The notes under the pieces were generated by a model. That model saw only the letters and a list, made by a program, of their open reading frames with translations, made no database searches and was not told the DNA's origin. DNA of 64,000 bases from Rhodosorus marinus CCMP1338 (lineage: Eukaryota; Plantae; Rhodophyta): the NCBI GenBank assembly GCA_029953675.1, contig JAMWBK010000004.1, forward strand, positions 682,001-746,000, in the 5' to 3' direction. Shown here piece after piece: positions 18,361 to 62,170 of the stretch. A program made the position numbers and the translations under genes. The stretch's first letter is position 1. Every line of letters begins with the position of its first letter.

Positions 18361-18444
18361 CATAGGGCCATGGGGCCATTTCTAATACTATTTCATTGCC
18401 CTATACGCTAGATATAATTTTAATTGAATGAATTGGTTCATGCC

Positions 18445-18530: not shown

Positions 18531-18533
18531 GTA

Positions 18534-18659: not shown

Positions 18660-18688
18660 ATGAACGCTGGTTTAATGGTAGACCTACC

Positions 18689-19137: not shown

Positions 19138-19169
19138 GTTTTTACTGCTTTCCGGAGGTGGTGGGGTGG

Positions 19170-19659: not shown

Positions 19660-20037
19660 AATTATCTCGGCCTAGTCGTTATTTGCCGGCTGGGGGATGG
19701 CGCAGTGAATTTGCCGCTGACAAGTATGAGACGTCGCAAAGAGGTGAAATATGCGGGGGTTTTGTCTTTCCCAGGCATTCGTGCTTCGGCTCTAGCTCGT
19801 CCCCTGGTACCTCTGGTCATTGAGTGCTTTGGGTTCATGGATTCTGTTGGTATTCGTTGGCTCTGGGAGTTACTTCGCGAACGCCCTGACACTCTCTCCT
19901 CGTTCTTGGCCCGTTTAAGTTTCCTGCTGTTGCGTATGAAAGCTGCTTTGATATTGAAGGCGCGCAATCTTCGCCGAGCGTTGTCTTTTTTTCCCTCGGG
20001 GTTTTTTCTTTCCGTCTTCGATTAAACAAATTCATTC
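19660..20037 (+). mobile_element. 5'-truncated family B copy
   Basis: MRRRKEVKYAGVLSFPGIRASALARPLVPLVIECFGFMDSVGIRWL..., ending CGATTAAACAAATTCATTC. Confidence 0.9.
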
Positions 20038-41430: not shown

Positions 41431-41737
41431 ACTGGACTTTACTGGACTTTACTAGCATAGCCTGAAGCGCTACGCAAGGCGTGAAGATGAACTAATAACT
41501 AGGGAGGCAAGCATGCAACCCCAGGCGCCGATGGCGCGCCTCGGAAAGCATGTCGCTGGAATATCGCCAAAGGGAGACACTTAAACGCCTCAAGAGCGCC
41601 AAATATTCAGTAGGATGCTCAGCAAAACATTTCCGCAACCACTCTAAACCCGACTTATCCACGTGACCAAAGCTTTCCACAATGAATGGCTGGAACCGGT
41701 GAGAGCGACCCTCAGGACTTTACTAGCATAGCCTGAA
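41431..41737 (-). mobile_element. Young 5'-truncated family A copy with a second 23-nt 3' terminus fused at its 5' end
   Basis: Tail ACTGGACTTT x2. The body differs from 53585-53850 at one position found by eye. GGACTTTACTAGCATAGCCTGAA is repeated at 41715-41737. Confidence 0.92.
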
Positions 41738-44769: not shown

Positions 44770-45658
44770 TGACCGCAGAAGTCGCCAGCTAGCAAAATAC
44801 CGAGAAGAATCTGTCCTTTTTCATCTATGTAACGAATTTACTCAGTAGATACGAACTGTTAATAAAAAACTCTCCAATTGACTAAGAATCAGAGGTATTT
44901 CCCGCCGTCTTCGGCGAACTAATTGCCCCAGGCGTTCTTCAAGTGACGGAACAAGCGGTAGGGACTGGGCTCCCGATTCGGAGCTGGCGAAAGTCTATCG
45001 CTAGGATACTTCAATGTGACCTTCATACAGCTGATCCTTGACGATCCTAGCCGATAAAGTGCATCGCAGCATAACACCGGTTCGAAAACTTTGCGCTCGC
45101 AAACACCACATGCAGTATTCACGAAAGGACCACGTGGATGGGTGGAAGGCCTGAGGTAAAGCATCCCGTACAGTAGCTTGACTGAAGCTGACAACAGACC
45201 TGGGCCGCGCTCTATAGCAGGCTAAAGATAGCCATGCGCTCGACGGCGACGACTCCCGATCGGATGCGGACACGTGTCTCGCTGGCATGATGTTATACAC
45301 TCCTCATCCAGCTGCGGCTTAGTGAGCTTTTTCTAGCCCAGAACGGGTTCCACAGGTTAGCCATCCGTCCGTAGTGATTAGCGGCTGCCTCTTTTTGCTC
45401 GAATCAGTCCGTTTAGCTGCTTTGCTATAACAACGGATCTACGTGGATGAGTGTCCGATGTGGACATGAAGGGTTGCTCCCCTGACTTTCGTGGCAACCA
45501 TAGACACTGAAAGGCAACACCCATTACATTCAGATATCTTCAGTTCCCCATGAAGTTTGTTATTTTTTTATTCAACACGTTTGGACCCTCTGAAGCTCAC
45601 AACAGGCACACTAAAGCCAGTCATCTAAATGTACAGAACTACCCTTTTGCGGCCAAAT

Positions 45659-46024
45659 TTATGCCGTGGACGGGTTAAGTGCATCGTCCCAACGGACGGT
45701 GAAGCATCTCCCGAGGTAGGGGTAGCAAACGGTCTCGGCTTGATTGTCATCTTCCCTGATTCCAGCAGACGGCTGAAAATTGGCGAGGAGATCCGGCACA
45801 TCTTCCTGCATGCCTTCGTCTATCCACTTTTTAAGCCCAACTTCACCACCCGGGAACCCACCGCAAAGGTAGTTCTTCCACACGCTGTTGTTGTCGTTGA
45901 TGATTTCTACTCCCTTTTCCGACTAGCTTTGATGCGTTTTCGCCATCTGCACTCGTGCTGGACACGCACGGCGTGCCTGAGTCGCCTTTCCACACAAAGA
46001 TCCAGCAGAAACTAATCCAATCAT
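45659..46024 (-). pseudogene. Pseudogene copy of the small putative plastid protein
   Basis: Same length as 54999-55364, but TGG has become TAG (plus-strand CTA at 45923-45925), giving ...HQS*SEKG. Confidence 0.8.
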
Positions 46025-47443
46025 TGTGATATACTTCTACTTTCGATAGAGGAAATTCCGCAAGTTGTTTTCTATATAGGTTGTTGTTGTCTTTCTCACT
46101 GTTGTGTCTGTCCTGGTCTCCCACCTCGATCAATGCCCTCTCACGCCTTCGTCCCTTCTTTATAGTCTTCCAGCGTTGATTCCAATACGATCGGTAATCG
46201 TGATCGGCAAAGTCTTTTGTAAAAACACAGCTGACTGACCAGCACGACTTCCACTCTTAAACACGAGTTCGCGAAAAGTTGGATTCGATCGGGGCTAAGG
46301 CCGTTGATCATAGAATGATTTCCTAAAGTGCTGAAACTGCTCTTGTGCACTTGTCCTCGCCTATCTCCACTAAACATGAATCAACGAAAGGATGAAAGTC
46401 AGCAATTGAATCAGTTCTCTATAGACTGTGCAGCGACGGTTCAAGCAAGGGCAATGAGACTCTCGCCCAGTCCATGCGTTCCAAACGTTGCGAAGGGCTG
46501 ACCACCACCTTTTCATGATCAGGTCGGTCCCTGCTCCGATCGGGCTGAAACCTCCGTTCGCAAACGCAATTCGATCAAAACTTGCCGAGGTGTTGGAGCA
46601 TACCTTCGAAAGGAGCGCAACGTCTACTGGGTGAGCTCATCAAGTGCTGGTAGGCTGCCTCGCTTGACGTACTCCCCAGCGCGCTCCCTCGCCTAACCGC
46701 TCATGGTTCCAGGCCACGTAAATCAAGCAATTCCCCAAAATAGATTAAGCGCAAATCACTTTACAGTCTACAAACATTACAAGCTTCATAGTACAGAACT
46801 GTTTTCTTTATTTGTCACTGAACATCCAAGTATAAGATGAATAACCCAAATAATTACAATAATAAAAATAATGCCGATATTAAGCTCAAATTAGGACAGC
46901 CTTTAATCTAGGAGGATACCACTGAATTGGGTATCTCGTCTAAAATATATATGTTTAAGAACAATATTGATTTGTATTGTTCATGATTAGGGTTTTTTGA
47001 TCATGATAAACATCGGTCCTACCGTAGATATAGGCACTCAAAGAATAGAATTTTATTCGTCCACGACTACGTGACGTGGATCCATTCATACATCTTTACT
47101 GATGATATCATGTAATTTGATTTGAAAAGGATTAATTTGGCGTCCGAATTTAGCGGTGTCGTCGATGAACTTGTAGAGGGTTTGGCAAACAGCTGCGCAA
47201 CTAACCTGGTGCTTTCCCAGAGGGGGAGCCAGCTCTGACTTCAACGCCTCATAGATTTATGTGCTGTGGGAGCGTGGAGGGGTGATGACTGATTACGCAC
47301 GTCAGGAGAGAATCTTTTTATTGGGAAAGCATTGGCCGAAAACTGTCGGACGGTTTCGTGCCTTTTGCCCCTCTCTGCAGGAATCCCTGCTTGAATGCTT
47401 TGGAGAGGCTTTCAGAACTTCAGTTAGACGCTTTTCGTAAACG

Positions 47444-47752
47444 AATGAATTTGGTTCAATCGGATGCTGAAAGAAAAGAAACCCGAGGGGAAAAAAAGAC
47501 TAAGGGCGGCGAAGATCGCGCGCCTCCAACATCAAAGCAGCGTTCATACGCCACCGCAATAAACTTAAAACGGGTAAACAACGAGAGAAGACGGACAGGG
47601 CGTTCGCGGAACAATTCCCGAAGCCAACGAGAACCAATGGAATCCATAAACCCAAAGCACTCAATGACCAGAGGTACCGGGCGATGAGCTAGAGCCGAAG
47701 CACGAATGCTTGGGAAAGACAAGGCCCCCGCATACTTCAATCCTTTGTGACG
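47444..47752 (-). mobile_element. 5'-truncated family B copy; empty site in duplicate copy 2
   Basis: MKYAGALSFPSIRASALAHRPVPLVIECFGFMDS... Flanks TAAACG / ACGGAAGGGCG correspond to TGAACGGCAGGGCG at ~56807. Confidence 0.9.
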
Positions 47753-47755
47753 GAA

Positions 47756-47990
47756 GGGCGATGTTTTCAGCTAGGATGGATTGCTGAATCCCCTTTAGCT
47801 TGATCTCAAGTCGGTGATGTTGCCAACGGGGATGGATTGCGGAACCCCTCAAAAAAAGGAAGAAATGTATTTGTTCAAGCGGGCGATGTTGGGATGGATT
47901 GCGGAAAACCCTTGTATTTGTTCAAGAGGGCGGTTTTGTCAAGCTGGGATAGGATGCTGAGCCTCCTTGTATTTGTTGAACAGGGCTTTT
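47756..47990 (+). repeat. Degenerate 54-bp tandem repeat, copy 1
   Basis: Recurring GGATGGATTGC(T/G)GAA and GTATTTGTTCAAG. Confidence 0.8.
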
Positions 47991-48799
47991 GGATGCTGCG
48001 CATTGGGTCTAGTGTATTTGTGCTATGTAGATTGGCGCCGTGGCCCCTGCCCGCCGAAACGAATCAACGAGTTTGCCAATTTCTACTTGAAGTTTGGTAT
48101 AGAGAATAGTCATGCACACTGCTATGAGATCCGGATGCTACTACGAACCCGATGGATAGCCTGGGCGTCTTCTTGATCAACAAAAAGGGCTTTTTTGTCA
48201 ATATCGATTTTCTACTGGCCTCTGACCCGTTTAACGATGTCGACCGATGCCGGTACCTCGCCCTAGACCGTAAAGATACCTGTGATTCAGTCGCTGGGTC
48301 TGGACCCGCGTGTGGGCTTTTCAGGGAGCCCTTGGACCCTTCTGTTCCAATCCACAACCAACCGGTACATTAACAGGCGAGGTGCCCAAGCGTCTGATCA
48401 GTTGACAATCCGCACCGGGCCTGAAGGATTAAAGGGCCTGAAACCAACTCATGCAAACACCAAATTTAGTAATCGTTTTACGGAAGTCCTTGTCGTCTAC
48501 GTAAAGGGGCGCAATGATGACATGGCTTTTGCGTGAATGGGTCTATATGTTTCTTGGTGAAGGAGCTCCAGCGTTGCCAAACGACGCCGTTTCTGAAACA
48601 TGTATTGCCCAGGCCCCGAAGCTCTTAGTATGAATTCATACGCTCTCAGCGTAAAGGGGAAAAGGTCCATCGGATGTATTTTGCGATCTGTACCTTGTCT
48701 GGTCTCGCTTCATCTTATCTAACTTCACTTGACTTCATGTGGATGTGAGCTCGTTTGAATATTTCAACTCGGCTAGAGTTCCTGTGAATTATAGTGATT

Positions 48800-49765
48800 T
48801 TATTCATCGGATGGCCTTCCTTCGTATAAATGTTCGATGTCCACCCACTTATTGTCTAAAAGGTTGTAGCTATATGCCCGATCATATCCGTCCCCACCAT
48901 TCACATAATCGTATTCACTCCCGTTGACGCTCAGGTCTTTGAATATGTCGTCTCCACCTTCTCCCCAAGCTGTGTCCTTGCCACCACCCAGACTAATCAC
49001 GTCGTTGCCCTCGCCTCCGTAGATGCTATCTTTACCGTTGCCGCCCTTAATTATATCATCACCGTCATCTCCAAAGATGAAATCTTGCGCTCCACTCCCA
49101 TGAAGGTAGTCGTTACCTCCGTTGCCGATTATCACATCTGCCTCCATTGTTCCGAAGATTCGATCATCAATATCGGTTCCAACGAAGAGGTGTGGGCACT
49201 TAATCTTCATCAAACACCCTCCAGTAGTTCCCCTACAACGCGAATCGTCGATAATAGCTTGTCTATTCACACCATTGTACTCGATATCAGCCACAATTGT
49301 CAGCGTTCTGAAGGTTTTACAGCAGTTGGAAGCCGCTGGACTCATTGTGTAGTCGTATCTGACGACAGTTAAGTTGTCCCCAGATTCATCCAGTTGAAAA
49401 TCGTCCAGCTTGTGAGCCTCGTCCACTGAGCCCTCCAGGAGACCCACACGCACCCTCTTGATGTAGTAGCCGAGTCTCGTCGTTCTGAAGGTCAGCTTTG
49501 CGCTTGTTACCCCAGTAGTGCGATCGTAGTTATTCTTCATACACACTGAAACCATGATATTAAACTGGTCCCGCATATCTCGACAGAAAGTGTCTCGTGC
49601 CCAGAACACCCTCCGTTCAGGAACTGGAACTGTAGCCGTGTCGCCAGGTGGGATCGACACTTTGGCAAAAGGAGGCATTGGGAAGTCCGAACATGTGCTC
49701 TGCGCTGATGCATAGTTCACCGCCACTACCATCGCCAGAAGGCTCAACTTAATAAACGTTGTCAT
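48800..49765 (-). CDS. Secreted protein: Cys-containing N-terminal domain plus RTX/hemolysin-type Ca-binding repeats, copy 1
   Basis: Signal peptide MTTFIKLSLLAMVVAVNYASA. GGxGxD-type nonapeptides GNGGNDYLH, GDDGDDIIK, GGNGKDSIY, GGEGNDVIS, LGGGKDTAW, GEGGDDIFK and GGDGYDRAY. TATA-like element ~123 bp upstream. Confidence 0.93.
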   Translation of the reverse strand: MTTFIKLSLLAMVVAVNYASAQSTCSDFPMPPFAKVSIPPGDTATVPVPERRVFWARDTFCRDMRDQFNIMVSVCMKNNYDRTTGVTSAKLTFRTTRLGYYIKRVRVGLLEGSVDEAHKLDDFQLDESGDNLTVVRYDYTMSPAASNCCKTFRTLTIVADIEYNGVNRQAIIDDSRCRGTTGGCLMKIKCPHLFVGTDIDDRIFGTMEADVIIGNGGNDYLHGSGAQDFIFGDDGDDIIKGGNGKDSIYGGEGNDVISLGGGKDTAWGEGGDDIFKDLSVNGSEYDYVNGGDGYDRAYSYNLLDNKWVDIEHLYEGRPSDE

Positions 49766-50689
49766 TCTTCCTTAGTCAAACGAGTTGCTCTCAGACAAAA
49801 CCTCTCTGTCAGTACTCGTTGACTCTGTTGCTGGATCTTTAGGCTTGCACCATCCACACACAAAGACGCATAAGGATACCCTTATATAGCCTGGGCCGGA
49901 AGATTCTGCCGGAAGCCAGCCCGAGGTTTCCACGGAAAAGGCTTCTGTTTACAGTCAAGGTGGGAACGGCCAACGAGGTGGAGACGACGAGGTAAGTCGC
50001 CATGTTGCACATGCTAGGAATATCACCGGCTGCCGTTGGAATTGTCTCAACGTATGAATTCTATTGTACTACAGAAAAACTCAGAGGAAAGCTAGAGAGC
50101 TCAGTTGAGGAAGCATATGCTTGGAATATCATCAGCAGCCGATAGATTTCTCCCTCGTCTGGATGTTATGATACTAAAGCAAAATTCGCCCACGAAAGTG
50201 TAAAGAACCCAGTAGAGGAATATCTACTGTTTGCACTCCTAGTTCTAACGTGTGCTATTCTTTCATTTTGCGCGAAACCCCGAGTATGTGGAGCGGCAGC
50301 GTACCAACGTAGCTTACTCTCATTTCCAGAATTGGAAAATGGTCGTTGAGTGTTCGCAGAGAAAACTTCATAGAAAAACAAATCGAAATTTTTCTGCTTC
50401 CGTTCGGTCCCTGGCATCCGCTCCCCTTGGAAATGAGGCAGCGCCGACGTTCGCATTCTTAGAGAACCGCAGGTAGAACAATTGATGGACAAATCACCCT
50501 CGCTGATCCCAGCATTTCCATCGACTAGGATTGGTTGTGTATTCTATCTTGGCGTTCAACTCTCCAAATGAAAAAGACCAGTCGCCACGTCAGAAACATT
50601 CATTCATCCCACTTCGGGCAGCACTTCAGTCGTTATAACCATCGAGAACTAAACCGTTCTGCGGAGAGTTTTCCTCTCTCAATTCGACT

Positions 50690-50723
50690 GAATTGAAATA
50701 AAGGGTTTCCTTTATTTCAATTC
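50690..50723. other. Perfect 15-bp hairpin specific to duplicate copy 1
   Basis: GAATTGAAATAAAGG-gttt-CCTTTATTTCAATTC. Absent at the paralogous position ~59490-59520. Confidence 0.85.
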
Positions 50724-51083
50724 GATAAAACCGACGGGGTAGTTAAGTTGCTCCGACAAAGAAAGTCGTGGAGGCAAGGGAGTGATGCAGTTTCCGGAGG
50801 GACCACCTCAGCGGCGCTTTTCCGTCTCGCAGGCATACTTTATGATTGCTGCCAAGGCATTGAATGGATTGATATGGGCTGTCATAAATCGTCAGATAAA
50901 CTCTATTGAAATCCATAACAAATTTTGAGCGTGTCTATTTGAGATTATACACAAAAACGAGTCTGATTTCCATGTCCGATTAAACGCCTAGATTCAGTCA
51001 ACATCAGCCAATCATCAATCATCATCGGTACACATATTGAATCATGATTATTTCTTATAATGACAGACTGTCACTCCGGGTAC

Positions 51084-51569
51084 TGAATGAATTTATTTAA
51101 TCGCAGGCAAAACTGAAAACCCCCCGCGGCGAAGAAAAAGACTAAAAGCCCGGCGAAGAAAAAGACTAAAAGCCCGGCGAAGATCGCGGGCCTCCAACAT
51201 CAAAGCAACGTTCATACACCACAGCAAGAATCTAAAACAGGTAAACAACGAGGACAGACGGTCAGGGCGTTCGCGGAACAATTCACGAAGCCAACGAGAA
51301 CCAATGGAATCCATAAGCCCAAAGCACTCAATGACCAGAAGTACTGGGCGATGAGCTGGAGCCGAAGCATGAATGCCCGGGGAAGACAAGGCCCCCGCAC
51401 GTTTCAACTCTTTGCGACGTTTCATATTGGCAGCGGCAAAGCCACGGCGCTCTCCCACAGCCGACAAATAGCGACCAGCCTGAGGATTAGCAAAGGCAAG
51501 ATCAACGTACGTCGAACGGCGGCTATTGTAACAGGTGACCACGAGGCCAGCGACGCGGCGTTCATCATT
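51084..51569 (-). mobile_element. 5'-truncated family B copy with in-frame RLE region and an internal 24-bp duplication
   Basis: YVDLAFANPQAGRYLSAVGERRGFAAANMKRRKELK...ECFGLMDSIG. GCGAAGAAAAAGACTAAAAGCCCG occurs twice. Confidence 0.92.
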
Positions 51570-51605
51570 CTAGCAAACGACGGTTGGGAAATTCGATCAC
51601 TGAGG

Positions 51606-51845
51606 GGTGGTTTGCTAGCATAGCCTGATGCGCTACGCAAGACGTAAAAGGAAATTAGGGACTAGAGAGAAGAGCGTGCAAGCCCAGGGGGCGGTGGCGC
51701 GTCCTCGGCGAGAATGTTGCTGGAATACCGCGAGAGAGCGACACTGAATTGAAGTGTGCTAATCATTAGGCGACACTCATCACGCATATACGGAGTTGTT
51801 GATAATTCATGCTCGGCATCTGGTCGTGTTTGAAGGAGATGCATT
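51606..51845 (-). mobile_element. Old family A 3' fragment
   Basis: GCTAGCATAGCCTGATGCGCTACGCAAG. Translates SVALSRYSSNILAEDA..LGL. Confidence 0.75.
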
Positions 51846-52277
51846 GATAATTCCCAAGCCCAAGTGGAAGGTAGAGATGGAAGAGCGAGAAGACTGTTGG
51901 GAAAAAAGGGTTTAAAAAAGTAGACACAACTGCATTCTTGGGATCTGTGAAAGTTTTAAGTGGGACAGCTTATGGATCGTTTGGTGTTTGGGCTTTTGAA
52001 CAACATCAGTGCGAAGCAGGCACGTTCTCGCGCAGAAGATCGAAGTGTTGGTGACCAAACTTCGTCGAGACCATCTTTGCCTGTGGGATTAGTCGCGGGA
52101 GAGCATCAATCATTCGCTGAGGTTGATAATCGAGCTTTTGGTGGAAACTAGAGCGGTTGATATTTTAGTTTTGGATTTAGGGTAAGTAATGGTTTCTTTA
52201 TGAGTGGCGCACTACGATTTTCAATGTGGTTGAGAAAACGATTGATTATAAATCAATATTTATCATTGATTGAATAA

Positions 52278-52438
52278 TATCGGACGCCAACATGTCGTTA
52301 TCTGACAAATCAAGCGAATTGTTTTTGTTATTCAGACTTAATAAGCTTATATCGGACGTGTGCAGAGGTTAAACAATATAATTATTCCGTAATTGCATGT
52401 CCGATAAACGATCTGAGACCGTCCGATATTTATCGGAC
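52278..52438. repeat. Cluster of five TATCGGAC motifs in direct and inverted orientation
   Basis: TATCGGAC at 52278, 52350 and 52431. GTCCGATA at 52399 and 52421. Confidence 0.8.
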
Positions 52439-53149
52439 ATTTGTTTATCACATACAAACGACAACCAAGATTTTGATTTCGGAACACCCCGATTTGAATG
52501 AATTGGTTTACTGTCTTCAGTTCTCCAACACATAGAGGTTCATCAACCGTTAGGAAGAACAGCATCTCCTTCCAAATATCCTCTGCGTAAGTTTTCACGA
52601 AAAGAGTCCTTCCCACTTTATGGCTGCAACCCCGGTTTCTTTGGTTCAGTATGCCAACAGCGGGATTGGCTGTAAGTGATGATCAGCGGGACCGATTAGC
52701 TCATCGACTAGCTCACCATAAGTTTTTCACTCATCTTGAATACATCCGTCGTCAGCAAAGCGAAAACCTCTAAAAAAAAACTAGAAACTCTGGTTGCCGT
52801 GCGAACCGCCCTGCCGCTCCCGGAGCGGACTGATCGTTAGCACAGACGTTTTAGCGATGTAGCCCCGTGCCGTCTCTGCCCGCGTAGTGTTCTTCTTCTT
52901 TGAAATACCTCCTCGGTACTTCGCCAAATTGCGGTTTCCGTAACGACTTCAGCCCTTCCAAACTATTTAGATGGAAGGTCCAGAGATACTTCAACCCTAA
53001 ATTTTTTTTTCAGATAAAGCACGAGAGTGCATAATGCGGTTGTCCCGAAGCAGTATTTCACTTCGCTGGTATTTATCCTGGAAAAAAATACCGCCGTTCA
53101 GTAACCGCACCGAGGACGCAATTAATTGGGGCTTTGGGTATATGGATTC

Positions 53150-53446
53150 TCTGCGCTGCGGGAGTTGTTCTCCAGGCATTCGTGTTTTGGCTGTAGCTCA
53201 TCGCCTGGGACCTCTGGTCATTGAGTGCTTTGGATTTATGGATTCCGTTGGTTCTCGTTGGCTTCGGGAATTGTTCCGCGAACGCCCTGTCCCGTCTGTC
53301 CTCGTTGTTTACCCGTTTAAGTTTCTTGCTGTGGCGTATGAACGCTGCTTTGATGTTGGAGGCGCGCGATCTTTGCCGCGCATAGTCTTTTTTCCCCAGG
53401 GGGGGGGGTTTTCTTTCAGTCGCCGATTAAACCACTTCATTCGTAT
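53150..53446 (+). mobile_element. 5'-truncated family B copy
   Basis: PLVIECFGFMDSVGSRWLRELFRERP..., ending CGATTAAACCACTTCATTC, which is part of a 17-bp hairpin (53430-53468). Confidence 0.9.
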
Positions 53447-53584
53447 TTTATATACGAATGAAGTGGTTATAAACTAAATCCTTGTAATTGGTAGCCATTG
53501 TTCTCGGCCTAGTGACCGCGAAAGTCTGCCAAATAGCAAAAGAACGAGAAAAATCTGTCTCCTTTTCATAGATGTATCGAATTC

Positions 53585-54165
53585 ACTGGACTTTACTAGC
53601 ATAGCCTGAAGCGCTACGCAAGGCGTGAAGATGAACTAATAACTAGGGAGGGAAGCATGCAACCCCAGGCGCCGATGGCGCGCCTCGGAAAGCATGTCGC
53701 TGGAATATCGCCAAAGGGAGACACTTAAACGCCTCAAGAGCGCCAAATATTCAGTAGGATGCTCAGCAAAACATTTCCGCAACCACTCTAAACCCGACTT
53801 ATCCACGTGACCAAAGCTTTCCACAATGAATGGCTGGAACCGGTGAGAGCGACCCTCAGCGCAAGGCAGACTGGCCATGCTCTCAGCATACCGTCGTTCC
53901 TTAACTCTTCGAAGGGCTGAAGCCGCGGCCCCCCGGCGGCGGGCGGCTGCGGTGAGGTGGGCGCTGGCCACGGGGCAGGTAATCGCAAGGTCCACATATG
54001 TTGAGCGTCTGGCAGCAGCGTCGGAGACGAGGAGATCGGCTATACAACGGGGCGGTGCAGAGTCCGAGATGGATCTGGGCAGTTCCGACTCAACCTCAAC
54101 CGTATGCCCTATCCGAGTCAAAGATTCGCTGAGGATGTACTTGAGGCGAGTCCTCAGTGGATGCG
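53585..54165 (-). mobile_element. Young 5'-truncated family A copy with an open RLE domain
   Basis: Open frame ..HPLRTRLKY..VEVESEL..IADLLVSD..TYVDLAITCP..RVKERRY..FQPFIVESFGHVDKSG..RRLSVSLWR. Tail ACTGGACTTT. Confidence 0.93.
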
Positions 54166-54998
54166 AAATGTTAGCAAAAAAAGCTCTCAAAAAAATGGAC
54201 TCAGAACAGCCGTATTTTCCGCCGTCTTCAGCGAACTAATCGACACGCAGTCGTTCTGCAAGTGACGGAACAAGTGGTAGGGACTGGGTTCCCGATTCGG
54301 AGCTGGCGTAAGTCTGTTGCTAGGATAGTTCAATGTGACCTTCATACCGTTGATCCTGAACGATCCTATAGCCGATAAAGTGCATCGCAGCATAGCACTG
54401 GTTAGAAAACTAGGCCGCAGGCACTCCATGCAGTTGTCTTAGTTCACGGAAGGACCACGTGGATGGGTGGAATGTCTGAGGCAAAATATCCCGCACAGTA
54501 TCTTGACTAAAGCTGAAAACAGACCCGAACCGCGCTTTTTAGCAGGCTAAAGATAGCCATGCGCTCGACGAGGACGACTCCCGATCCGGTTGCGGACGCG
54601 TGTCTCACTGGCATGATGAGATTCACCCCTCATCCAGCTATGGCTTGGTGAGCTTTTTCTAGCCCAGAACGGGTTCCACAGGTTAGCCACAGGTTAGCCA
54701 CCCATCCGCAGTGATCAGGGGCTGCCTATTTTCGCGAATCAGTCCATTCAGCTGCTTTGCTCTTGCTATAACAACGGATCTACGTCAATGAGTGTCCGAT
54801 GTGCACATGAAGGGCTGCTCCCATGACTTTGGTGTCAACCATCGACACTGAAAGGCAACACCCATTACATTCAGGTATCTTTAGTTCCCCATGAAGTTTG
54901 TTATTTTTTATTCAACACGTTTGGACCCTCTGAAGCTCACAACAGGCACACTAAAGCCAGTCATCTAAATGTACAGAACTACCCTTTTGCGGCCAAAC

Positions 54999-55364
54999 TT
55001 ATGCCGTGGACGGGTTAAGTGCATCGTCCCAATGGACGGTGAAGCATCTCCCGAGGTAGGGGTAGCAAACGGTCTCGGCTTGATTGTCATCTTCCTTGAT
55101 TCCAGCAGACGGCTGAAAGTTGGCGACGAGATCCGGCACATCTTCCCGCATGCCTTCGTCTATCCACGTTTGGAGGCCAACTTCACCACCCGGGAACCCA
55201 CCGCAGAAGTAGTTCTTCCACGCGCTGTTGTTGTCGTTGATAATTTCTACTCCCTTTTCAGACCAGCTTTGATGAGTTCTCGCCATCTGCACTCGTGCTG
55301 GACACGCACGGCGTGCCTGAGTCGCCTTTCCACACAAAGATCCAGCAGAAACGAATCCCATCAT
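54999..55364 (-). CDS. Small (121 aa) putative plastid-targeted protein of unknown function
   Basis: MMGFVSAGSLCGKATQARRACPARVQMA resembles a red-algal transit peptide (F near the N-terminus, Ala/Arg/Ser-rich, no acidic residues). The mature part contains WKNYFCGGFPGGEVGL..W..G. TATAAAG ~138 bp upstream. Confidence 0.6.
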   Translation of the reverse strand: MMGFVSAGSLCGKATQARRACPARVQMARTHQSWSEKGVEIINDNNSAWKNYFCGGFPGGEVGLQTWIDEGMREDVPDLVANFQPSAGIKEDDNQAETVCYPYLGRCFTVHWDDALNPSTA

Positions 55365-56655
55365 TGTGAAATATTTCTACTTTCGATAGAGGCTATTCCA
55401 CAAGTTATGTTCTATAGGTTGTTGTTGTCTTTCTCACTGTTATGTCTGTCCTGGTCTCCCGCTTCGATCAATGCCCTCTCACGCCTTCGTCCCTTCTTTA
55501 TAGTCTTCCAGCGTAGATTCCAATACGATCGGTAATCGTGACCGGCAAAGTCTTTAGTAAAAACACAGCTGACTGACCAGCACGACTTCCACTGTTAAAC
55601 ACGAGTTCGCGAAAAGTTGGATTCGATCGGGGCTAAGGCCGTTGATCATAGAATGATTTCCTAAAGTGCTGAAACTGCTCTTGTGCACTTGTCCCCCCCT
55701 ACCTCCACTAAACATGAATCAACGAAAGGATGAAAGTCAGCAATTGAATCAGTTCTCTATAGACTTTGCAGCGACGGAGTAAGCACGGGCAATGAGACTC
55801 TCGCCCAGTCTATGCGTTCCAAACGTTGCGAAGGGCTGACCGCCACCGTTGCGTGAGTAGGTCGGTTCCTGCTCCGATCGGGCTGAAACCTCCGCTCGCA
55901 AACGCAATTCAATCAAAACTTGCCGAGCCGTTGGAGCATACCTTCGAAAGGAGCGCAAAGTCTTACTAGGTGAGCTCATCAAGTGCTGTTAGGCTGCCCC
56001 GCCTGACGTACTCCCCAGCGCGCTCCCTCGCCTCACCCCACGCGCATGGTTCCAGGCCACATAAATCAAGCAATTCCCCAAAATAGATTAAGAGCAAATC
56101 ACTTGATAGTCTACAAACATTTTTTCATAATCAACTACAAACTTCATAGAATAGAACTGTTTTCTTTATTTGTCACTGAACAAATCCAAATGTAAGATGA
56201 ATCACCCAAAGAATTTCTATAATGAAAATATTGAGGATACTAAGCTCAAATTAAGACAAATGGATGTAGACCTTTAATCTAGGAGGATACCACTGAATTG
56301 GGTATCTCGTCTAAAATCTATATGTTTAAGAACAATATTGCTTCGTATTGTTCATGATTAGGAATTTTCTGATCATGATAAACATCGGTACAACCGTAGA
56401 TGTGTTCAACCAAAAAGAATAGAATTTTATTCGTCCACGACTAGGTGACGTGGATCCATTCATATATCTTTATTGATGATATCTATGTAATTTGATTTGA
56501 AAAGGATTAATTTGGCGTCCGAGTTTAGTGCTGCCGCTTCGGTAGAGCATGGCGAACGGCTGCGCAACTAACTTGGTGCTTTCCCAGCGGGGGAGCCCTC
56601 TGTGACTCCGACGTCTTCTCGTAGCTTTCTGTGCTGTGGGAACGTGGAGGGGTGA

Positions 56656-57469
56656 TGACTGATTACACGCGTCAGGAGAGAGACTTTGTATTGGAAAACC
56701 ACTGACCGAAACTGTCGGACGGTTTCGTGCTTTTTGCCCTTCTCTGCTGGAATCCCTTCTTGAACGCTTTGCAGAGACTTTCAGATCTTCAGTTGGACCT
56801 GTTTCCTGAACGGCAGGGCGATGTTTTCAGCTTGGATGGATTGCTGAATCCCCTTTTGTTTGTTCAAGAGGTGTTGCCAACGGGATGGATTGCGGAATCC
56901 CTCTGTATTTGTTCAAGAGGGCCATGTTTTCAGTTGGGATGGATTGCTGAGCTCGCTCGTATTTGTTCAAGAGGGAGATGTTTTCAGCTTGGGTGGATTG
57001 CGGAAACTCCTCGGATTTGTTCAAGAGGGGGATGTTGTTGGCTGGGATAGGTTAATGAGCCTCCTTGTATTTGTTGAACAGGGCTTTTGCATGCTGCGCA
57101 CGGGGTCAGGTGTCTTTAAGCTGTTTAGATTGACGCCGTAGCCCCTGCACGTCGATGCGAATCAACGAGTGTGCCAGCTTCCACATGAACTTTGGTATAG
57201 AGAACAGTGTGAAGCACAATACTATGAGTCCGGATGCTACTACTACGAATCCGATGGATAGCCTGAGCGTCTTCCGGATCAAAAGAAAAAGTCCGCTTTC
57301 GTCAATATCGACTTTCAAATGGCCTCTGACCCATTCAACGATGTCGGCCGAAGCCGCCCTAGACCGCGAAAAAACCTGTGTTTCAGTCGTTGTGTGTGTA
57401 ATTGCGTGTGCGCTTTTCAAGGAGAAGTCCGATCCTCCCGTTCCAATCCACAACCAGCTAGTACATTAA
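56656..57469 (+). pseudogene. Decayed gene with 18-aa Cys-rich repeats, copy 2
   Basis: CSRGPCFQLGWIAELARI / CSRGRCFQLGWIAETPRI repeats, RINEC..FGIENS, ASDPFND and VPIHNQLVH*. Frameshifts differ from those in copy 1. Confidence 0.5.
56817..57080 (+). repeat. 54-bp tandem repeat, ~5 units, copy 2
   Basis: Unit GAGGGxxATGTTTTCAGxTxGGATGGATTGCxGAxxxxxxTCGTATTTGTTCAA. Confidence 0.9.
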
Positions 57470-57937
57470 CTGGCGAGGTGCCCAAGGGTCTCAGCAGTTG
57501 ACGATTTGGAACGGGCCTGAAGGATTAAAGGGCATGAATCCAACTCATGTAAACACCAATCTTAGTGATCGTTTTACCGCAGTCCTTGCTGTCTACGTAA
57601 AGGGGCGCAATGAGGACATGGGTTTTGCGTCGATAGGTCTATACATCTCTTGCTGAAATAGATCTAGCACTATCAAATGACGCCGTTTCTGAGACACGTT
57701 GTGCTGAGCCCCGCGAATTCGTAGATTCTAAGTGGAGCGTAACAGAAAAACTCCCATGGGAAGTATTTTGCGATCTTTACTTGTTTTGTCTCACTTCATC
57801 TCACCTAACTTCGTTTGAGCTCATTTTAAATGTGACCTTGTTTGACTACGTCTGCTAGATTTCATGTGAATTACAATGATTTATTCTTATCCTCTTTCCC
57901 GACTCCTTGACATGCTTCTAGTTACTGAATGAGAAGA

Positions 57938-58903
57938 TTACGGAGAGGCACGGATTCCTTCGTATAGATCGTCGATGCCCACAAACGCATTGTCGTCAAC
58001 GTTGAAGGTATATGCCCTATCATACCCTGCCCCACCATTCACGTAATCGTATTCACTGCCGGCAAGGCTCAGGTCGTTGATTATGTCGTCTCCACCTTCT
58101 CCCCAAGCTTTGTCCTTGCCACCACCCATATTAATCACGTCGTTACCGTCTCCCCCGTAGATTCTATCTTTACCGCTCCCGGCCTTAATTCTATCATCAC
58201 CGTCATCTCCAAAGATGAAGTCCTGCGCCTCCTTCCCATGAATGTAGTCGTTGCCTCCGTTGCCGATTATTACGTCTGCTTCTTTTGTTCCGAAGATTCG
58301 ATCATCAGCATCGGATCCAACGAAGAGGTGCGGGCACTTAATCTTCATCAAACACCCTCCAGTAATTCCCCTACAACGCGAATCGTCGATAATAGCTTGT
58401 CTATTCACACCATTGTACTCGATATCAGCCACAATTGTCAACGTTCTGAAGGTTTTGCAGCAGTTGGAAGCCGCTGGACTCATTGTATAGTCGTATCTGA
58501 CGACAGTTAAGTTGTCCCCAGATTCATCCAGTTGAAAATCGTCCAACTTGTGAGCCTCGTCCACTGAGCCCTCCAGGAGACCCACCCGCACCCTCTTGAT
58601 GTAGTAGCCGAGTCTCGTCGGTCTCAAGGTCAACTTTGCGCTTGTTACCCCGGTAGCGCGATCGTAGCTATTCTTCATACACACTGAAACCATGATATTA
58701 AACTGGTCCCGCATATCTCGACAGAAAGTGTCTCGTGCCCAGAACACCCTCCGCTCGGGAGCTGTCACTGTAGCCATGTCGCCAGCTGGGATCTTCACGT
58801 TGGCAAAAGCAGGCATTGGGAAGTCCGAACATGTGTTCTGCGCTGATGCATAGTTCACCGCCACTACCATCGACAGAAGACTCAACTTAATAAACATTGC
58901 CAT
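57938..58903 (-). CDS. Secreted RTX-repeat protein, copy 2
   Basis: First ATG at 58903 (MAMFIKLSLLSMVVAVNYASA). Same length (966 bp) and architecture as 48800-49765. Confidence 0.93.
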   Translation of the reverse strand: MAMFIKLSLLSMVVAVNYASAQNTCSDFPMPAFANVKIPAGDMATVTAPERRVFWARDTFCRDMRDQFNIMVSVCMKNSYDRATGVTSAKLTLRPTRLGYYIKRVRVGLLEGSVDEAHKLDDFQLDESGDNLTVVRYDYTMSPAASNCCKTFRTLTIVADIEYNGVNRQAIIDDSRCRGITGGCLMKIKCPHLFVGSDADDRIFGTKEADVIIGNGGNDYIHGKEAQDFIFGDDGDDRIKAGSGKDRIYGGDGNDVINMGGGKDKAWGEGGDDIINDLSLAGSEYDYVNGGAGYDRAYTFNVDDNAFVGIDDLYEGIRASP

Positions 58904-59986
58904 TATTCCTAGGTCAAACGAGTTGCTCACGACGCAAAACTTCTCTGCCTGTACTCGTTGATCTGTTGCTGGATCTATAGACTAGCACCATCCACTTCCA
59001 AGGTGCAGAGGGATACCTTTATATGGCCTGGGCCGGTAGATTCTGTCGGAAGGCAGTCCGAGGTTTCCACGGAAAAAGCTTCTGTTGCGGCCAAGCGGGG
59101 AACGGCCAACGAAGTGACCTCGCCGAGGTAACTCGCCATGTTTCACATGCTTGGAATATCACCGGTCGCTGTTAGTGCTTTCCCAACGTCTGGGTTTTCT
59201 TATACCACAGAAAATTTCGCAGACGAAAGTGTACGGAACACAGCAGATGAAGATCTGCTGTTCGTACGGCTGGTTCTAACGGGTACTTTAGTTCTTCTTA
59301 CGTAACCCCAAGCACGCGGAGCGGCTGTGTACGCGCTGAATACATTGCCCTCATTTCCAGCTTTGGAATATGGAGGCAGGCGTTGAATACTCGCAAAGAA
59401 AGGTAATAAATAGGCGGATTGGGGAAAAAGCGGATGGGGCGCATCGGTCTTCAGAACTTTTGAAGACGACGTTTTGCATTTCCGATCTCAATTCGACTAA
59501 ACCCATTGTGTCATACCAATAAACCCAACGGGGTAGTTAAGTTTTCTCCGATAAACAACAAAGAAAGCTGAGGAGGCAGGGAGCGACCCCAATAATTTCC
59601 GGAGAGGGACCGCCTCGTTGGAGCTCACTTGTGGCGGACACACTGAGGAATTGCTCGCAATCTACGATGGGTTGTCATAAATCGTCCAATAAATCTTAGA
59701 GAGTGAGAGATTAATGAAATCCATCAGAAAATTTGGGCATGGCCATTGAAAATTGTACATAAAAACGAGTCCAGTTTCTCCGTCCGATTAATCGTTCCCA
59801 GATTCAGTCAACGCGAGTCTAGCAGTCAATCACTTCTGGCACACATATTGAATCATGATTATTTCTTATAATGACAGACTGTCCGTCTCATGTATTGAAT
59901 TGGGATTGCATCTGAGTTCCACAGCTTGGCCCCTCAACCTACTGCATTTTCGGAATGCTCAAACATGATTGAGACAGGCACGTTCT

Positions 59987-60222
59987 GAATGAATTTGTTG
60001 TATCGGAGACCGAAAGAAAAAACCCCGAGGGGAAAAGAAAGATTACGCGCGGCGCAGATCGCGCGCCTCCCCCAACATCATACGCCACAGCAAGAAACTC
60101 AAACTGGTAAACGAGGACAGACGGTCAGGGCGCTCGTGGAGCAATTGCCGAAGCCAACGAGAACTAACGGAGTCTACAAGCCCAAAGCGCTCAATGACCA
60201 GAGGTACCAGGCGATGAGCTAG
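59987..60222 (-). mobile_element. 5'-truncated family B copy with GTTCT TSD; empty site at ~52024
   Basis: CACGTTCT-[GAATGAATTTG...GAGCTA]-GTTCT-ACCGCAAAGGATCG versus copy 1 CACGTTCT-CGCGCAGAAGATCG. Confidence 0.9.
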
Positions 60223-60476
60223 TTCTACCGCAAAGGATCGAAATTGGTGACCAAACTTCGTCGAGACCATCTTTGGCAGTGGGATTGGTCGCATGAGGCC
60301 ATCACTGGCTGACGTTGACAATCGAACTTTTGATGGAAACTCGGACTGATATTTTAAGTTTCGACTTAGAGTAAGCAAGAACTTAGGTTTCTCCATGCGT
60401 GGCGAGCCCGCGCTTGTCAACACGGCTGCAGAAAAAAGGATCGAATATCAATCACAATTTGTCCTTGATTGAATAA

Positions 60477-60650
60477 TATCGGACGCCAAAAAGTAGTTAT
60501 CTGACATGACTCCTATTTTATTTTTTATTCAGTCTCAATAAACGTATATCAGACGTAAGGCAGAGTATAAACTATCTAATTATTACGTAATTGCAGGTCC
60601 GATAAGCTTTACGAGACCGTCCGATATTTATCGGACACTTTCTATCGGAC
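60477..60650. repeat. Cluster of TATCGGAC motifs, copy 2
   Basis: Motifs at 60477, 60547 (variant), 60597, 60619, 60629 and 60643. Confidence 0.8.
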
Positions 60651-60751
60651 GGAAGTGACAATCCTGTTTTTGATTCAGGACACGCCCACGATTTACTGGA
60701 CTTTACGGGACTTTACCCCCCCATTCATCAACCGTTGAGGAGAGCGGCCTG

Positions 60752-60812
60752 GTCTTTTCTTTTCCGCTCTCCTTTTTTTTTCTTTCAATCTCGGATTAAA
60801 CACGTTCATTCA
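60752..60812 (+). mobile_element. Very short family B 3' end, absent from duplicate copy 1
   Basis: TTTTTCTTTCAATCTCGGATTAAACACGTTCATTCA. Confidence 0.7.
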
Positions 60813-61584
60813 GTGCCCCTTCCAAATATCCGAAACCTAAGCGTTTACGAAAGGGTCCCTCCCACTCTATGCCGTAACATTCCTAAAACTCGTTTTATCC
60901 ATTTCCAACGGCGCCAGCACAATACGCAATACTGAAGTGTTAGGCCCTGGAGATGGTTTCTCTGGTTCCCTGTGCAACAGAGGAATTTTAGTTGTGTAAG
61001 TGATGTCGGGGTTGACCTACAAGCTCGTCAACACCCTCGCCATAGGGCTTTCACTCATCCGATATATAAATGTCGTCAGCAAAGCGAAAACCAAAAAAAA
61101 AAAATAGAAACTCTAGTTCCCGCCGCGCCAGCCGCCCTGCCGGATGGCGCGGGAACGGCCGCTCCAGGAGCGGCCTGATTTTCGTTAGATACGCGTTTTA
61201 GCCATGAGACCCTAAGCTCTCTCGGCCTGTAGCCTTCTCTTGTTTGAAATTCCTCCGCTGTAGTTCTCCAAACTTCGGTTTACGTAACTTACAAGTCGGC
61301 ACCTGACGACGGCTTCAGACTAATAGGTTTGAAGGTCCCTTCATTGTGCAACTCCTTTTTTCAAAGAAAAACAGGAGAAAAATAATACGTTGTCCAGAGC
61401 AAAATAAATACAGACCGGTATTTCTTTAATTCACTGGTAAAATTCTCTTAGAATTAAACGCATTCAATCATTCAGGAAAATTACCGAAGCAAACGCGCTG
61501 GAATCGAGGGTTTTTTTTTTTCATACCTCTGATCGAAAATACGTTCGTTCTGCACCGACGGAATCGATCATTGCCGCAAACGCT

Positions 61585-61759: not shown

Positions 61760-62170
61760 CTAGGACAACAAATGGACTTTTGCTACAGTTTGAGCTGCCG
61801 ATTTTTTTGACCTGCTTATAGCAACTGAATGAGAAGATTGGGAGGTGACTGGCCTTCCCTTGGTTATGTCTTCGATGTCTTCCCGCACGTTGTCGTTAAC
61901 GTTGAAGGTGTATGCGCGGTCAAACCCTTGCCCACCATTCGCGTAATCGTATTCACTCCCGAAGATGCTCAGGTCTTTGATGATGTCGTTTCCAGCTTCT
62001 CCCCAAGCTTTGTCCTTGCCACCACCCATATTCGTCGTTCCAGCTCGTCCGTGGGCGTGGTCTTTACCGTTGCCGGACCTAATTATATCATCACCACGAG
62101 CTCCAAAGACGAAGTCCCAACCCTCCTTTGAATGCAGGTAGTCGTCACCTCCGTTGCCGATTATCACATC
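61760..62170 (-). pseudogene. 5'-truncated third RTX-repeat paralog
   Basis: YDVIIGNGGDDYLH..GSEYDYANGGQGFDRAYTFNVNDN aligns with the C-termini of copies 1 and 2. There is an in-frame TGA just upstream, no signal peptide or N-terminal domain, a 2-codon deletion in one repeat and a read-through C-terminus. Confidence 0.8.

Follow-up and report, generated by a model that had tools for sequence, protein, structure and literature searches.

Folding of RTX block V of the Bordetella adenylate cyclase toxin is calcium-dependent and is nucleated from its C-terminal cap. Beta-roll enzymes secreted via T1SS mostly lack cysteines, and the R-modules of AlgE epimerases bind anionic polysaccharide and modulate activity. 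The cyanobacterial RTX proteins SwmA, oscillin and Sll1951 are extracellular, acidic and calcium-dependent, with structural or surface roles; they are also much larger than the algal protein considered here, devoid of cysteines and T1SS-dependent (PMC3034196). The nuclear genome of the red alga Rhodosorus marinus, a marine species, contains a small lineage-restricted family that combines a Cys-rich domain with a bacterial-type RTX block and is predicted to be secreted. We have analyzed two of its members, located in one window (the whole 64-kb stretch of DNA under study), together with their paralogs and relatives.

Architecture of the two RTX genes

Both RTX reading frames of the original prediction are intact and lie exactly where they had been placed on the minus strand: copy 1 (P0001) at 48800-49765 (321 aa, stop codon at 48800-48802) and copy 2 (P0002, 321 aa from the first ATG) at 57938-58903. 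The two are 86% identical without gaps, and their products are identical to those of the deposited NCBI gene models; the single-exon structure agrees with these models as well as with the colinear transcript of a homolog, in line with the earlier description of the genes as intronless. Each polypeptide would consist of four parts (all on the minus strand), namely a cleavable ER signal peptide (residues 1-21), a beta-rich orphan domain of ~170 residues, an RTX block of nine GGxGxDxUx nonapeptides and a C-terminal cap.

The predicted signal peptide (49703-49765 in copy 1, 58841-58903 in copy 2) was delineated by a hydropathy heuristic. Residues 5-19 have a mean Kyte-Doolittle hydropathy of 1.6-1.9 (1.75 in copy 1) and are followed by a putative cleavage site between A-S-A and Q, which in copy 1 places small residues at -3 and -1; these features support the earlier impression of a cleavable-looking signal. 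The same hydropathy analysis revealed no second hydrophobic segment elsewhere in the RTX proteins, and a signal-peptide-like N-terminus is conserved in all paralogs.

The 8-Cys domain that had been noticed N-terminal to the RTX block spans 171 aa (residues 22-192; 49190-49702 in copy 1, 58328-58840 in copy 2), with cysteines at positions 25, 61, 75, 148, 149, 177, 184 and 190, all upstream of the repeats. These eight positions are identical in three paralogs, and seven of them are invariant alignment columns even among paralogs 30% identical; presumably, they would form four disulfides made in the ER. The domain has no match in Pfam (at E<=10) or among PDB sequences, and 1.84 billion representative proteins include no relative of it outside Rhodosorus. 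In a word-indexed profile search, 5.8e9 clusters yielded nothing but an MMETSP fragment, and scanning viral and metagenome contigs for patterns gave no relative. The domain is predicted to be all-beta, with 8-9 strands in low-confidence AF2 models. Structure prediction was weak in general (mean pLDDT 43.6 and 52.2), Foldseek searches with the predicted models gave no match at E<=1e-3, and comparison of a low-confidence model with Bordetella block V yielded TM scores of 0.51-0.53 (normalised to the target); the putative beta-roll (RTX) and beta-sandwich folds rest mainly on sequence.

The RTX block itself is bona fide, as had been proposed: Pfam HemolysinCabind (PF00353) is matched at 66-70 bits (cut-off 23; E 1.8e-18 in copy 1 and 1.4e-19 in copy 2), residues 193-321 match solved RTX domains with E-values down to 2e-40, and the organism-named relatives are all bacterial. 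The initial count of about seven repeats was too low. Residues 196-276 (48938-49180 in copy 1, 58076-58318 in copy 2) form nine in-register nonapeptides. In each of the nine, the sixth residue is Asp and the eighth is hydrophobic. They are followed by a C-terminal flank or cap (residues 277-316; 48818-48937 and 57956-58075, respectively) that includes a tenth GGDGYD at residue 290. This cap is well conserved between the two subfamilies described below (DY..GG.G.D....N at invariant columns), and alignments to solved RTX blocks continue through it, as do 63 of 118 bacterial alignments.

The latter observation bears on the idea that the GGxGxD repeats originated within the alga, through convergence or internal amplification, and share no ancestry with bacterial RTX. 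Short repeats rich in Gly and Asp can evolve on repeated occasions, repetition boosts E-values and no donor can be named; nevertheless, the similarity extends into a non-repetitive flank, and the exact nine-residue register, with its Asp 6 and hydrophobic 8, is kept in all nine units. Moreover, at the DNA level a tandem periodicity of 27 nt, which would mark recent amplification, is absent, and the repeats are therefore old. We regard such an in situ origin as highly unlikely.

Genomic setting and transcription

The genes reside on JAMWBK010000004.1, a 3,191,941-bp contig of the R. marinus CCMP1338 Nanopore assembly, an ONT long-read assembly with 13 contigs >1 Mb (PMC10250338). Copies 1 and 2 each belong to one of two tandem duplication units (44841-52944 and 54153-61288, delineated by blastn and repeat families D1-D20) with a period of about 9.1-9.3 kb, which by blastn share 88% identity in the far flank, 88% in the gene plus promoter and 76% in the 3' flank. 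A truncated third copy (61847-62170, minus strand), absent from the earlier description and detected by tblastn and alignment, is limited to residues 210-319 (RTX repeats and cap), with a 2-residue deletion and without start, signal peptide or N-domain; it gives 61-72% identity in tblastn, P0003 being the nearest, and is likely a duplication relic or pseudogene. The window also contains an Aa_trans amino-acid transporter gene (62598-63989, minus strand; 463 aa, PF01490 E 1.3e-42), a paralog of which (85% DNA identity between the two loci) adjoins P0003, an intact third RTX gene that lies some 25 kb further along the contig.

Besides this transporter, the eukaryote-type neighbours include a C2H2 zinc finger and a CAP-domain protein. 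A dispersed host repeat family occurs at 6.4, 18-20, 38 and 41 kb as well as inside both duplicated units and beside P0003, and only 19 ORFs >=150 aa are present in the 64 kb. The composition of the RTX genes is host-like, with GC of 0.49-0.51 (vs. 0.48 for the window) and GC3 of 0.53-0.57 (vs. 0.60-0.61 for neighbouring genes).

TATA-like elements (CTATATAA/CATATAAA) are located 120-123 nt upstream of both ATGs in the window, as TATATAA at 49882-49888 in copy 1 (123 nt) and as ATATAAA at 59018-59024 in copy 2 (about 120 nt), both on the minus strand. The predicted TATA box proved to be conserved also at paralogous loci outside the window, CTATATAA being found at -118 to -135 in four of the four loci examined (copies 1 and 2, P0003 and P0122), and bacterial promoter or terminator motifs showed no excess. 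A 1198-nt MMETSP transcript labelled R. marinus, which comes from an independent dataset and can be aligned colinearly for 975 nt (68% of nucleotides identical), shows that a Rhodosorus homolog of the window genes is transcribed. This divergent homolog carries two frameshifts and a stop, and the transcript has a 5' UTR of 91 nt or more, in keeping with the TATA spacing.

Bacterial contamination or a chimeric assembly could be invoked with reference to the assembly paper (PMC10250338), which does not state the algal cultures to be axenic, and to the abundance of RTX genes in marine bacteria. This explanation is, however, effectively refuted by the spread of five intact copies and a fragment over two long-read contigs of multi-megabase size, by host repeats interleaved with the RTX genes, by eukaryote-type neighbours, by a TATA box at every copy examined, by GC matching that of the host, by the homologous transcript in an independent dataset and by a gene density that is not of bacterial type. 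The genes are indeed, as had been supposed, embedded in eukaryotic DNA.

The gene family, its maintenance and its origin

At least five intact family genes are present on two contigs (P0001, P0002 and P0003 on contig 4; P0122 and P0124 on contig 1); they have a common signal-peptide, Cys-domain and RTX layout and form two subfamilies about 30% identical. With dN/dS of 0.46-0.60 (Fisher p 0.006-0.0002), the RTX genes are under purifying selection, the constraint being only moderate at dN/dS about 0.5. Such values might also suit a decaying family of recent duplicates under weak constraint and with no current function, as might the truncated copy, the lesions in the MMETSP transcript and the degenerate repeats of subfamily B. 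Decay nevertheless appears quite unlikely given that the five genomic ORFs are all intact, that dN/dS is significantly below 1, that Cys, cap and promoter are conserved across paralogs 30% identical and that conservation is higher in the gene than in the 3' flank (88% vs. 76%). Degeneration of the subfamily B RTX region (Pfam E 1.8e-6, about three canonical motifs) does imply that calcium binding may not be essential to the family.

Full-length homologs outside Rhodosorus were absent from the collections searched, including NCBI, UniRef and MMETSP proteins, and a widespread eukaryotic family is rejected on these grounds, as contamination is on the contig evidence. An ancient, vertically inherited eukaryotic family that was lost or diverged past recognition elsewhere would accommodate the fully host-like composition and the considerable age implied by subfamilies only about 30% identical; with no full-length or N-domain homolog in the other eukaryotes of these collections and exclusively bacterial organism-named RTX relatives, it is scarcely credible.

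Matches to the RTX part cover only the C-terminal portion of the query and comprise, in addition to the named bacterial proteins, unnamed metagenome proteins. The best bacterial matches have 40-50% identity, with similarity among repeats inflating their E-values, and because their scores are flat at 58-67 bits no donor stands out. From these sequence relationships the RTX block is likely to be of bacterial origin, and the horizontal acquisition originally suggested is consistent with the named relatives, its basis being taxonomic distribution rather than a particular donor. The companion idea of re-routing to the ER is partly retained: an ER-type signal peptide is predicted, but the underlying premise, that N-terminal signal peptides are absent from RTX proteins, was too strong. 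Among 107 related RTX matches from bacteria or metagenomes, 12 had a hydrophobic N-terminus in a crude hydropathy screen, so that about 10% of relatives appear to have such a signal, and at least five (P0048, P0073, P0039, P0046 and P0098) combine clear Sec-type signals with cysteines; therefore, re-routing may not have needed a new signal.

The order of elements in these five proteins (Sec-type signal, then cysteines, then RTX repeats) lends some weight to transfer of the whole gene for a Sec-secreted protein, including signal peptide, N-domain and RTX, from an unsampled bacterium; the bacterial signal would then function in the ER as it is, with neither fusion to an algal domain nor re-routing. 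A weak match between the N-domain profile and a bacterial surface-repeat protein with DUF11/DUF7927 domains (6 stretches, summed E 3.8e-6) points the same way. However, this DUF11-like similarity has an hhalign probability of only 13.6% over 57 columns, the family and P0048 are aligned by hhalign in the RTX part only (residues 195-270), and no bacterial protein aligns over the N-domain among 1.84e9 representatives. Domains with 8-12 Cys are, in addition, more typical of eukaryotic secreted proteins, and we consider whole-gene transfer unlikely.

Overall, it is fairly probable that these are genuine R. marinus nuclear genes for a genus-restricted small secreted family, in which a bacterial RTX block is joined to an orphan domain. 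The block would most likely have come from a bacterium and been joined to this domain before the subfamily split; since then, its composition would have come to resemble that of the host, and tandem and segmental duplication would have multiplied the genes. For the product we infer signal-peptide cleavage, disulfides, calcium binding and an extracellular location. The polypeptide would enter the ER from N to C, and calcium in the ER (roughly 0.1-1 mM) and then in seawater (about 10 mM) would exceed the RTX folding threshold; therefore, starting at the cap, the block would fold into a parallel beta-roll loaded with calcium, and it would keep this fold outside the cell. Rigid and acidic, it might serve as a scaffold or as a surface for binding, with the disulfide-bonded N-domain displayed on the cell surface or within the mucilage, while the adhesion, matrix or mineral roles suggested at the outset are speculation. 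The Rhodosorus RTX family is a real but modest example of a protein module, probably bacterial, that a eukaryote appears to send through its own secretory pathway.

Comparison with known RTX systems

Block V of the Bordetella toxin (PDB 5CXL/5CVW, 9P0C, 7USL) resembles the algal RTX region in having about nine nonapeptides and then a non-repetitive flank with a last GGxGxD-like turn (E 2e-40 against the multi-block domain and 1e-7 against block V by itself). Unlike the toxin, the algal protein has no toxin moiety, acylation or pore-forming region, multi-block array or T1SS context, and it possesses a predicted N-terminal signal peptide and a predicted disulfide-rich domain; nothing suggests toxicity. 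Serralysin-family metalloproteases and Pseudomonas/Serratia family I.3 lipases share with it an N-terminal functional domain followed by a short beta-roll of similar length (E from 8e-8 for lipase to 2e-5 for protease C among PDB sequences), whereas the algal N-domain is neither protease nor lipase, and matches no family, and export of the algal protein is predicted to proceed via signal peptide and ER. The median Cys count among bacterial RTX matches is 0, vs. 8 in the algal protein.

The Sec-signal bacterial RTX proteins (metagenomic P0048/P0073, 321 aa; P0039; P0046; P0098) are likewise small, with a hydrophobic N-terminal signal, few Cys and RTX repeats, but in them the repeats begin right after the signal and fill the protein, with no equivalent of the 170-residue 8-Cys domain. 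Cyanobacterial proteins do occur among the algal RTX matches, the likeness to SwmA, oscillin and Sll1951 being one of description. The R-modules of Azotobacter vinelandii mannuronan C5-epimerases (PDB 2ML2/2ML3) are stand-alone RTX modules matched at E 2e-5 to 4e-5; although the algal protein has no epimerase A-module, AlgE-like polysaccharide binding is a plausible functional parallel, given the anionic sulfated polysaccharide that coats the alga.

RTX repeat block and cap

Two genes on the reverse strand, at 48800-49765 (copy 1) and 57938-58903 (copy 2), each encode from the first ATG of the reading frame a 321-residue protein, and the two products are 86% identical in a gap-free alignment. 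Both belong to the RTX repeat superfamily PF00353 (HemolysinCabind), their tandem GGxGxDxUx nonapeptides scoring 66.5 and 70.1 bits (E = 1.8e-18 and 1.4e-19), where 23 bits is the gathering cut-off. The original prediction had about seven repeats, which proved to be an undercount: residues 196-276 hold nine nonapeptides, consecutive and in register, with Asp at position 6 and a hydrophobic residue at position 8 in 9/9, followed by a 13-residue spacer, a tenth GGDGYD turn and a short tail. By sequence, residues 193-321 match solved RTX domains, best of all the multi-block RTX region of the Bordetella adenylate cyclase toxin (E = 2e-40), with further PDB matches to family I.3 lipases, serralysins and AlgE R-modules. 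AlphaFold2 models of this part display 3-residue strands every 9 residues, with pLDDT of just 55-69 there, and Foldseek aligns it with block V structures at TM 0.51-0.53 (target-normalised) and an E-value of only 0.06-0.1. Recent in-situ amplification of the repeats was ruled out, because a 27-nt periodicity was looked for in their DNA and none was found.

Traits of RTX toxins (a pore-forming region with acylation sites, effector or cysteine-protease domains) were not found in these proteins, and the NCBIfam RTX_toxin model matches the repeat part alone (residues 194-299), at 48 bits vs. a cut-off of 1000. Nothing in the sequence suggests a toxin role.

Host genome setting, duplication and expression

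Both products are identical to gene models deposited on JAMWBK010000004.1 (contig 4; 3,191,941 bp), of which the window covers about 682-746 kb, and the CCMP1338 assembly is an Oxford Nanopore long-read assembly with 13 contigs >1 Mb (PMC10250338). Other genes of the window are of eukaryote type (an Aa_trans amino-acid transporter, a C2H2 zinc finger, a CAP-domain protein), some of the largest ORFs being without a family; gene density is low (the 64 kb hold 19 ORFs of 150 aa or more), and the RTX genes are close to neighbouring genes in GC and GC3. A dispersed repeat family present at 6.4, 18-20, 38 and 41 kb recurs within each duplicated unit and next to the third paralog, and so places a marker of the host among the RTX genes. 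Bacterial promoter and terminator motifs near the RTX genes are not above shuffled expectation, and a CTATATAA-type box lies 118-135 nt upstream of the ATG at 4/4 loci inspected, including that of a ~30%-identical paralog, in keeping with the TATA-driven expression proposed at the outset. Taken together, the neighbours, gene density, dispersed repeats, GC and GC3, absent bacterial motifs and conserved box speak against contamination or a chimeric assembly, both of which are effectively excluded. The claim that the genes are embedded in eukaryotic DNA is thus borne out, and the chimeric contig that could have overturned it did not come to light.

An out-of-frame ATG lies at 49851-49853, with an equivalent 5' of copy 2, ~30-35 nt past the TATA box and near the point where transcription should begin; were it transcribed, a very short uORF (of 4 codons in copy 1) would precede the main ATG. 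Near the start of the window, at 952-2424 (-), an ORF of 490 aa encodes a CAP (cysteine-rich secretory protein) domain (Pfam E = 4.5e-17) and is probably another secreted cysteine-rich protein.

The RTX genes sit in a tandem duplication (44841-52944 vs. 54153-61288) with a period of ~9.1-9.3 kb. A truncated third copy at 61847-62170, keeping residues 210-319 only, is found just downstream of the Aa_trans gene at 62598-63989 (-). The third intact paralog, P0003 (NDN08_002091; 69% identical), lies ~25 kb further along contig 4 and adjoins a second Aa_trans gene (12478-13869 of its locus, L001); the two transporter genes share 85% DNA identity and were duplicated together with the RTX genes. RTX copy and transporter are in tandem in the window and convergent at the P0003 locus, and this difference in relative orientation points to an inversion after duplication.

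Several further observations concern the same region. Copies of the dispersed repeat are found at 6392-6513, 18157-20005, 38116-38527, 41448-41537, 47440-47760, 51090-51700, 53168-53444 and 59987-60222 of the window and at 7039-7259 of L001; they are 76-91% identical, occur in both orientations and contain ORF fragments sharing the motif ...SRWLRELFRERP..., to which an intact-looking 184-aa ORF at 53636-54190 (-) is more distantly related. The repeat ORFs lack a Pfam match, and the family is probably a transposable-element remnant; one copy contains a perfect 24-nt tandem repeat (51127-51183, 2.4 copies). About 800 nt downstream of each RTX gene there is a 54-nt tandem array, which has grown from 2 copies (47888-48003) to 5 (56815-57090) in unit 2, the one carrying copy 2. 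A sub-block (45564-46374 vs. 54904-55712) is 97% identical between units, well above the 85-88% of the RTX genes, which points to gene conversion or a more recent insertion. It contains an annotated 121-aa gene (54999-55364, minus strand), a doubtful model given that the unit 1 counterpart is broken, leaving a 74-aa ORF.

Beyond contig 4, two neighbouring paralogs on contig 1, which we term subfamily B, bring the intact proteins to at least five: P0122 (NDN08_005340), ~30% identical and likewise made up of a signal peptide, a Cys domain and an RTX block in that order, and P0124 (NDN08_005336), found by further search. A fragment, P0121, comes from an MMETSP transcriptome labelled R. marinus. 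The MMETSP transcript (L004, 1198 nt) aligns colinearly with the window ORFs along 975 nt (68% identity) and therefore supports a single-exon structure, as expected from the intronless genes of the original prediction; it shows transcription in an independent dataset for a divergent homolog only. The whole protein can be read from the transcript only by disregarding two frameshifts (one at a G7 homopolymer near nt 215) and a single in-frame stop within the RTX part, so that the sequence represents a transcribed pseudogene or else comes from an error-prone assembly; its first cysteine is changed to Phe. Among the three contig-4 genes, dN/dS is 0.46-0.60, significantly below 1 (Fisher p 0.006 to 0.0002), and between units the gene plus promoter is 88% identical vs. 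76% for the 3' flank, both of which indicate that the RTX genes are constrained, though not strongly.

Putative secretion signal and N-terminal domain

Residues 5-19 have a mean hydropathy of 1.6-1.9 and are followed by ASA/Q, a putative cleavage site that meets the -3/-1 rule; elsewhere in the protein the top 19-residue window reaches 0.6-1.0, without a second hydrophobic segment, and none of the C-termini (...PSDE, ...RASP, ...GRPV) ends in K/HDEL, i.e., an ER-retention tail is absent. On this heuristic hydropathy reading, the architecture appears to be that of a eukaryotic classical secretory protein, with a cleavable signal peptide and neither a transmembrane segment nor a retention tail. 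All paralogs share the signal-peptide-like N-terminal segment, and to that heuristic extent the signal peptide first proposed is confirmed.

Classical RTX exoproteins lack an N-terminal signal peptide and carry an uncleaved C-terminal secretion signal of ~60 residues (PMC3034196). Here only 45 residues follow the ninth repeat, most of them belonging to the conserved cap. The signal of type I secretion systems (T1SS) has no searchable consensus; T1SS components (ABC transporter, membrane fusion protein, TolC-like protein) are absent among the ten largest other ORFs of the window and from the gene calls around all paralogs, and the host is a eukaryote. Given the N-terminal signal, the lack of room for a 60-residue signal past the cap and the lack of T1SS context, these proteins are not classical type I secreted RTX exoproteins.

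The underlying premise that RTX proteins come without N-terminal signal peptides nevertheless needs correction. Among the 107 related bacterial or metagenomic RTX matches that start with Met, a simple hydropathy screen picks out 12 whose N-terminus is hydrophobic, and P0048, P0073, P0039, P0046 and P0098 within this broader bacterial/metagenomic set have a Sec-type-like signal peptide, then cysteines, then RTX repeats. Since relatives combine the two features, a signal peptide with RTX repeats is unusual and not unique to R. marinus. The existence of such proteins also lends weight to a live rival explanation, transfer of the whole gene from an unsampled bacterium; yet the 8-Cys domain is missing from all five, whose alignment is limited to residues 195-270, and we regard a whole-gene transfer as unlikely. 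P0048 and P0073, considered as full-length homologs for their shared length of 321 aa, signal peptide and cysteines, were rejected, as the RTX part alone aligns.

The 8-Cys N-terminal region anticipated by the original prediction is real: Cys 25, 61, 75, 148, 149, 177, 184 and 190 all precede the repeats. Across the five intact proteins, seven of the eight fall in invariant alignment columns, with the eighth shifted by one position, and subfamily B has four extra cysteines. The cap pattern DY..GG.G.D....N is kept in both subfamilies, and the RTX repeats of subfamily B are degenerate, giving a weak pass for PF00353 (28.3 bits, E = 1.8e-6).

By sequence comparison, this N-terminal domain appears to be an orphan. 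Its HMM (residues 22-192) retrieved only Rhodosorus and one weak bacterial match from 1.84 billion representative proteins; a word-indexed profile search of 5.8e9 clusters gave nothing outside Rhodosorus; there was no Pfam match at E<=10, PDB sequences at E<=10 yielded just chance glycogen synthase matches, and scans of viral and metagenome contigs gave nothing. That weak bacterial match, a DUF11/DUF7927 surface protein of 2355 aa, was set aside as an unproven relative (hhalign probability 13.6%). The bacterial RTX proteins P0012, P0036, P0041, P0067 and P0109 cover more of the query and were examined for a reach into the N-terminal domain; their alignments begin at residues 127-147 in D/G-rich sequence and look like over-extension of the repeats, and were likewise not accepted as homology. 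Two AlphaFold2 runs (4 and 5 sequences, all the depth obtainable) reached mean pLDDT values of 43.6 and 52.2, too low for a fold of the N-terminal domain; the two poor models agree on an all-beta N-terminal domain and on short strands that recur every 9 residues along the RTX part. Foldseek found nothing in the PDB at E<=1e-3, and weak Ig-like/beta-sandwich matches (adaptin appendage, GH2 sandwich domains, FN3) are a hint only.

Origin, proposed folding route and comparison with known systems

All 117 non-Rhodosorus relatives retrieved for the RTX part are confined to the C-terminal half of the query, and every organism-named one is bacterial. The best bacterial RTX matches (40-50% identity over 80-115 residues) have flat scores of 58-67 bits. 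Full-length relatives were found in Rhodosorus only, and the widespread eukaryotic homologs that would have spoken for vertical inheritance did not appear. Pfam and InterPro list some eukaryotic PF00353 matches; among the RTX matches retrieved, the distribution appears patchy, comprising one eukaryotic lineage and otherwise bacteria. The RTX similarity is arguably homology rather than convergence, because the alignment runs into the non-repetitive cap. The block is integrated in the recipient genome, and expression is seen for the divergent MMETSP homolog. For the horizontally acquired module originally proposed, no donor stands out among the flat bacterial scores. A bacterial origin of the RTX block is the best reading, based on distribution rather than a tree, the repeats being too short and repetitive to align reliably. 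For the fuller scenario, in which a bacterial RTX calcium-dependent folding module was domesticated by a eukaryote, joined to a disulfide-rich domain that is lineage-specific and possibly de novo, and sent out via the ER in place of type I secretion, our confidence is tentative, a little short of an even call.

The proteins already have NCBI and UniProt entries, labelled hypothetical or calcium-binding, and the open-access papers searched included none on red-algal RTX proteins or on signal-peptide RTX proteins in eukaryotes, one apparent match proving irrelevant. RTX beta-rolls are a textbook domain tied to one export route, that of type I secretion with calcium-triggered extracellular folding. 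A eukaryotic family in which an ER signal peptide and a disulfide-bonded domain precede a full RTX block with its cap would show the module to be portable across secretion systems and domains of life; if true, this would be a natural demonstration of RTX beta-rolls folding and functioning in a eukaryotic secretory pathway and would suggest that algae have a new class of proteins at the cell surface or in the mucilage. Red algae have a reduced gene inventory, and the family, limited in scope to one genus and known here from sequence alone, offers a concrete and testable example of how a single domain may pass from bacteria to a eukaryote, here a red alga, be fused there and have its genes amplified locally. 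It may also open a first way into the extracellular proteins of unicellular red algae, which are largely unknown, and, in practical terms, supply a naturally ER-compatible, calcium-switchable scaffold.

As we propose it, transcription would begin from the TATA promoter, and the protein would be translocated co-translationally, with its signal peptide cut at ASA/Q. The N-terminal domain would fold oxidatively, forming four disulfides, and the RTX block would undergo calcium-driven folding, nucleated at the cap, in the calcium-rich ER lumen and stay folded in seawater. The expected product is a soluble, acidic extracellular protein (the mature chain has 49 D+E vs. 31 K+R), in which a rigid beta-roll carries the orphan domain. 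The calcium gradient driving folding would thus run from the cytosol to the ER lumen and seawater, vs. from the bacterial cytosol to the medium in type I secretion. By analogy, the protein may plausibly act at the cell surface or in the mucilage of sulfated polysaccharide: AlgE R-modules offer a parallel for a polysaccharide-associated role, and cyanobacterial RTX surface proteins (PMC3034196) offer one for a role at the surface.
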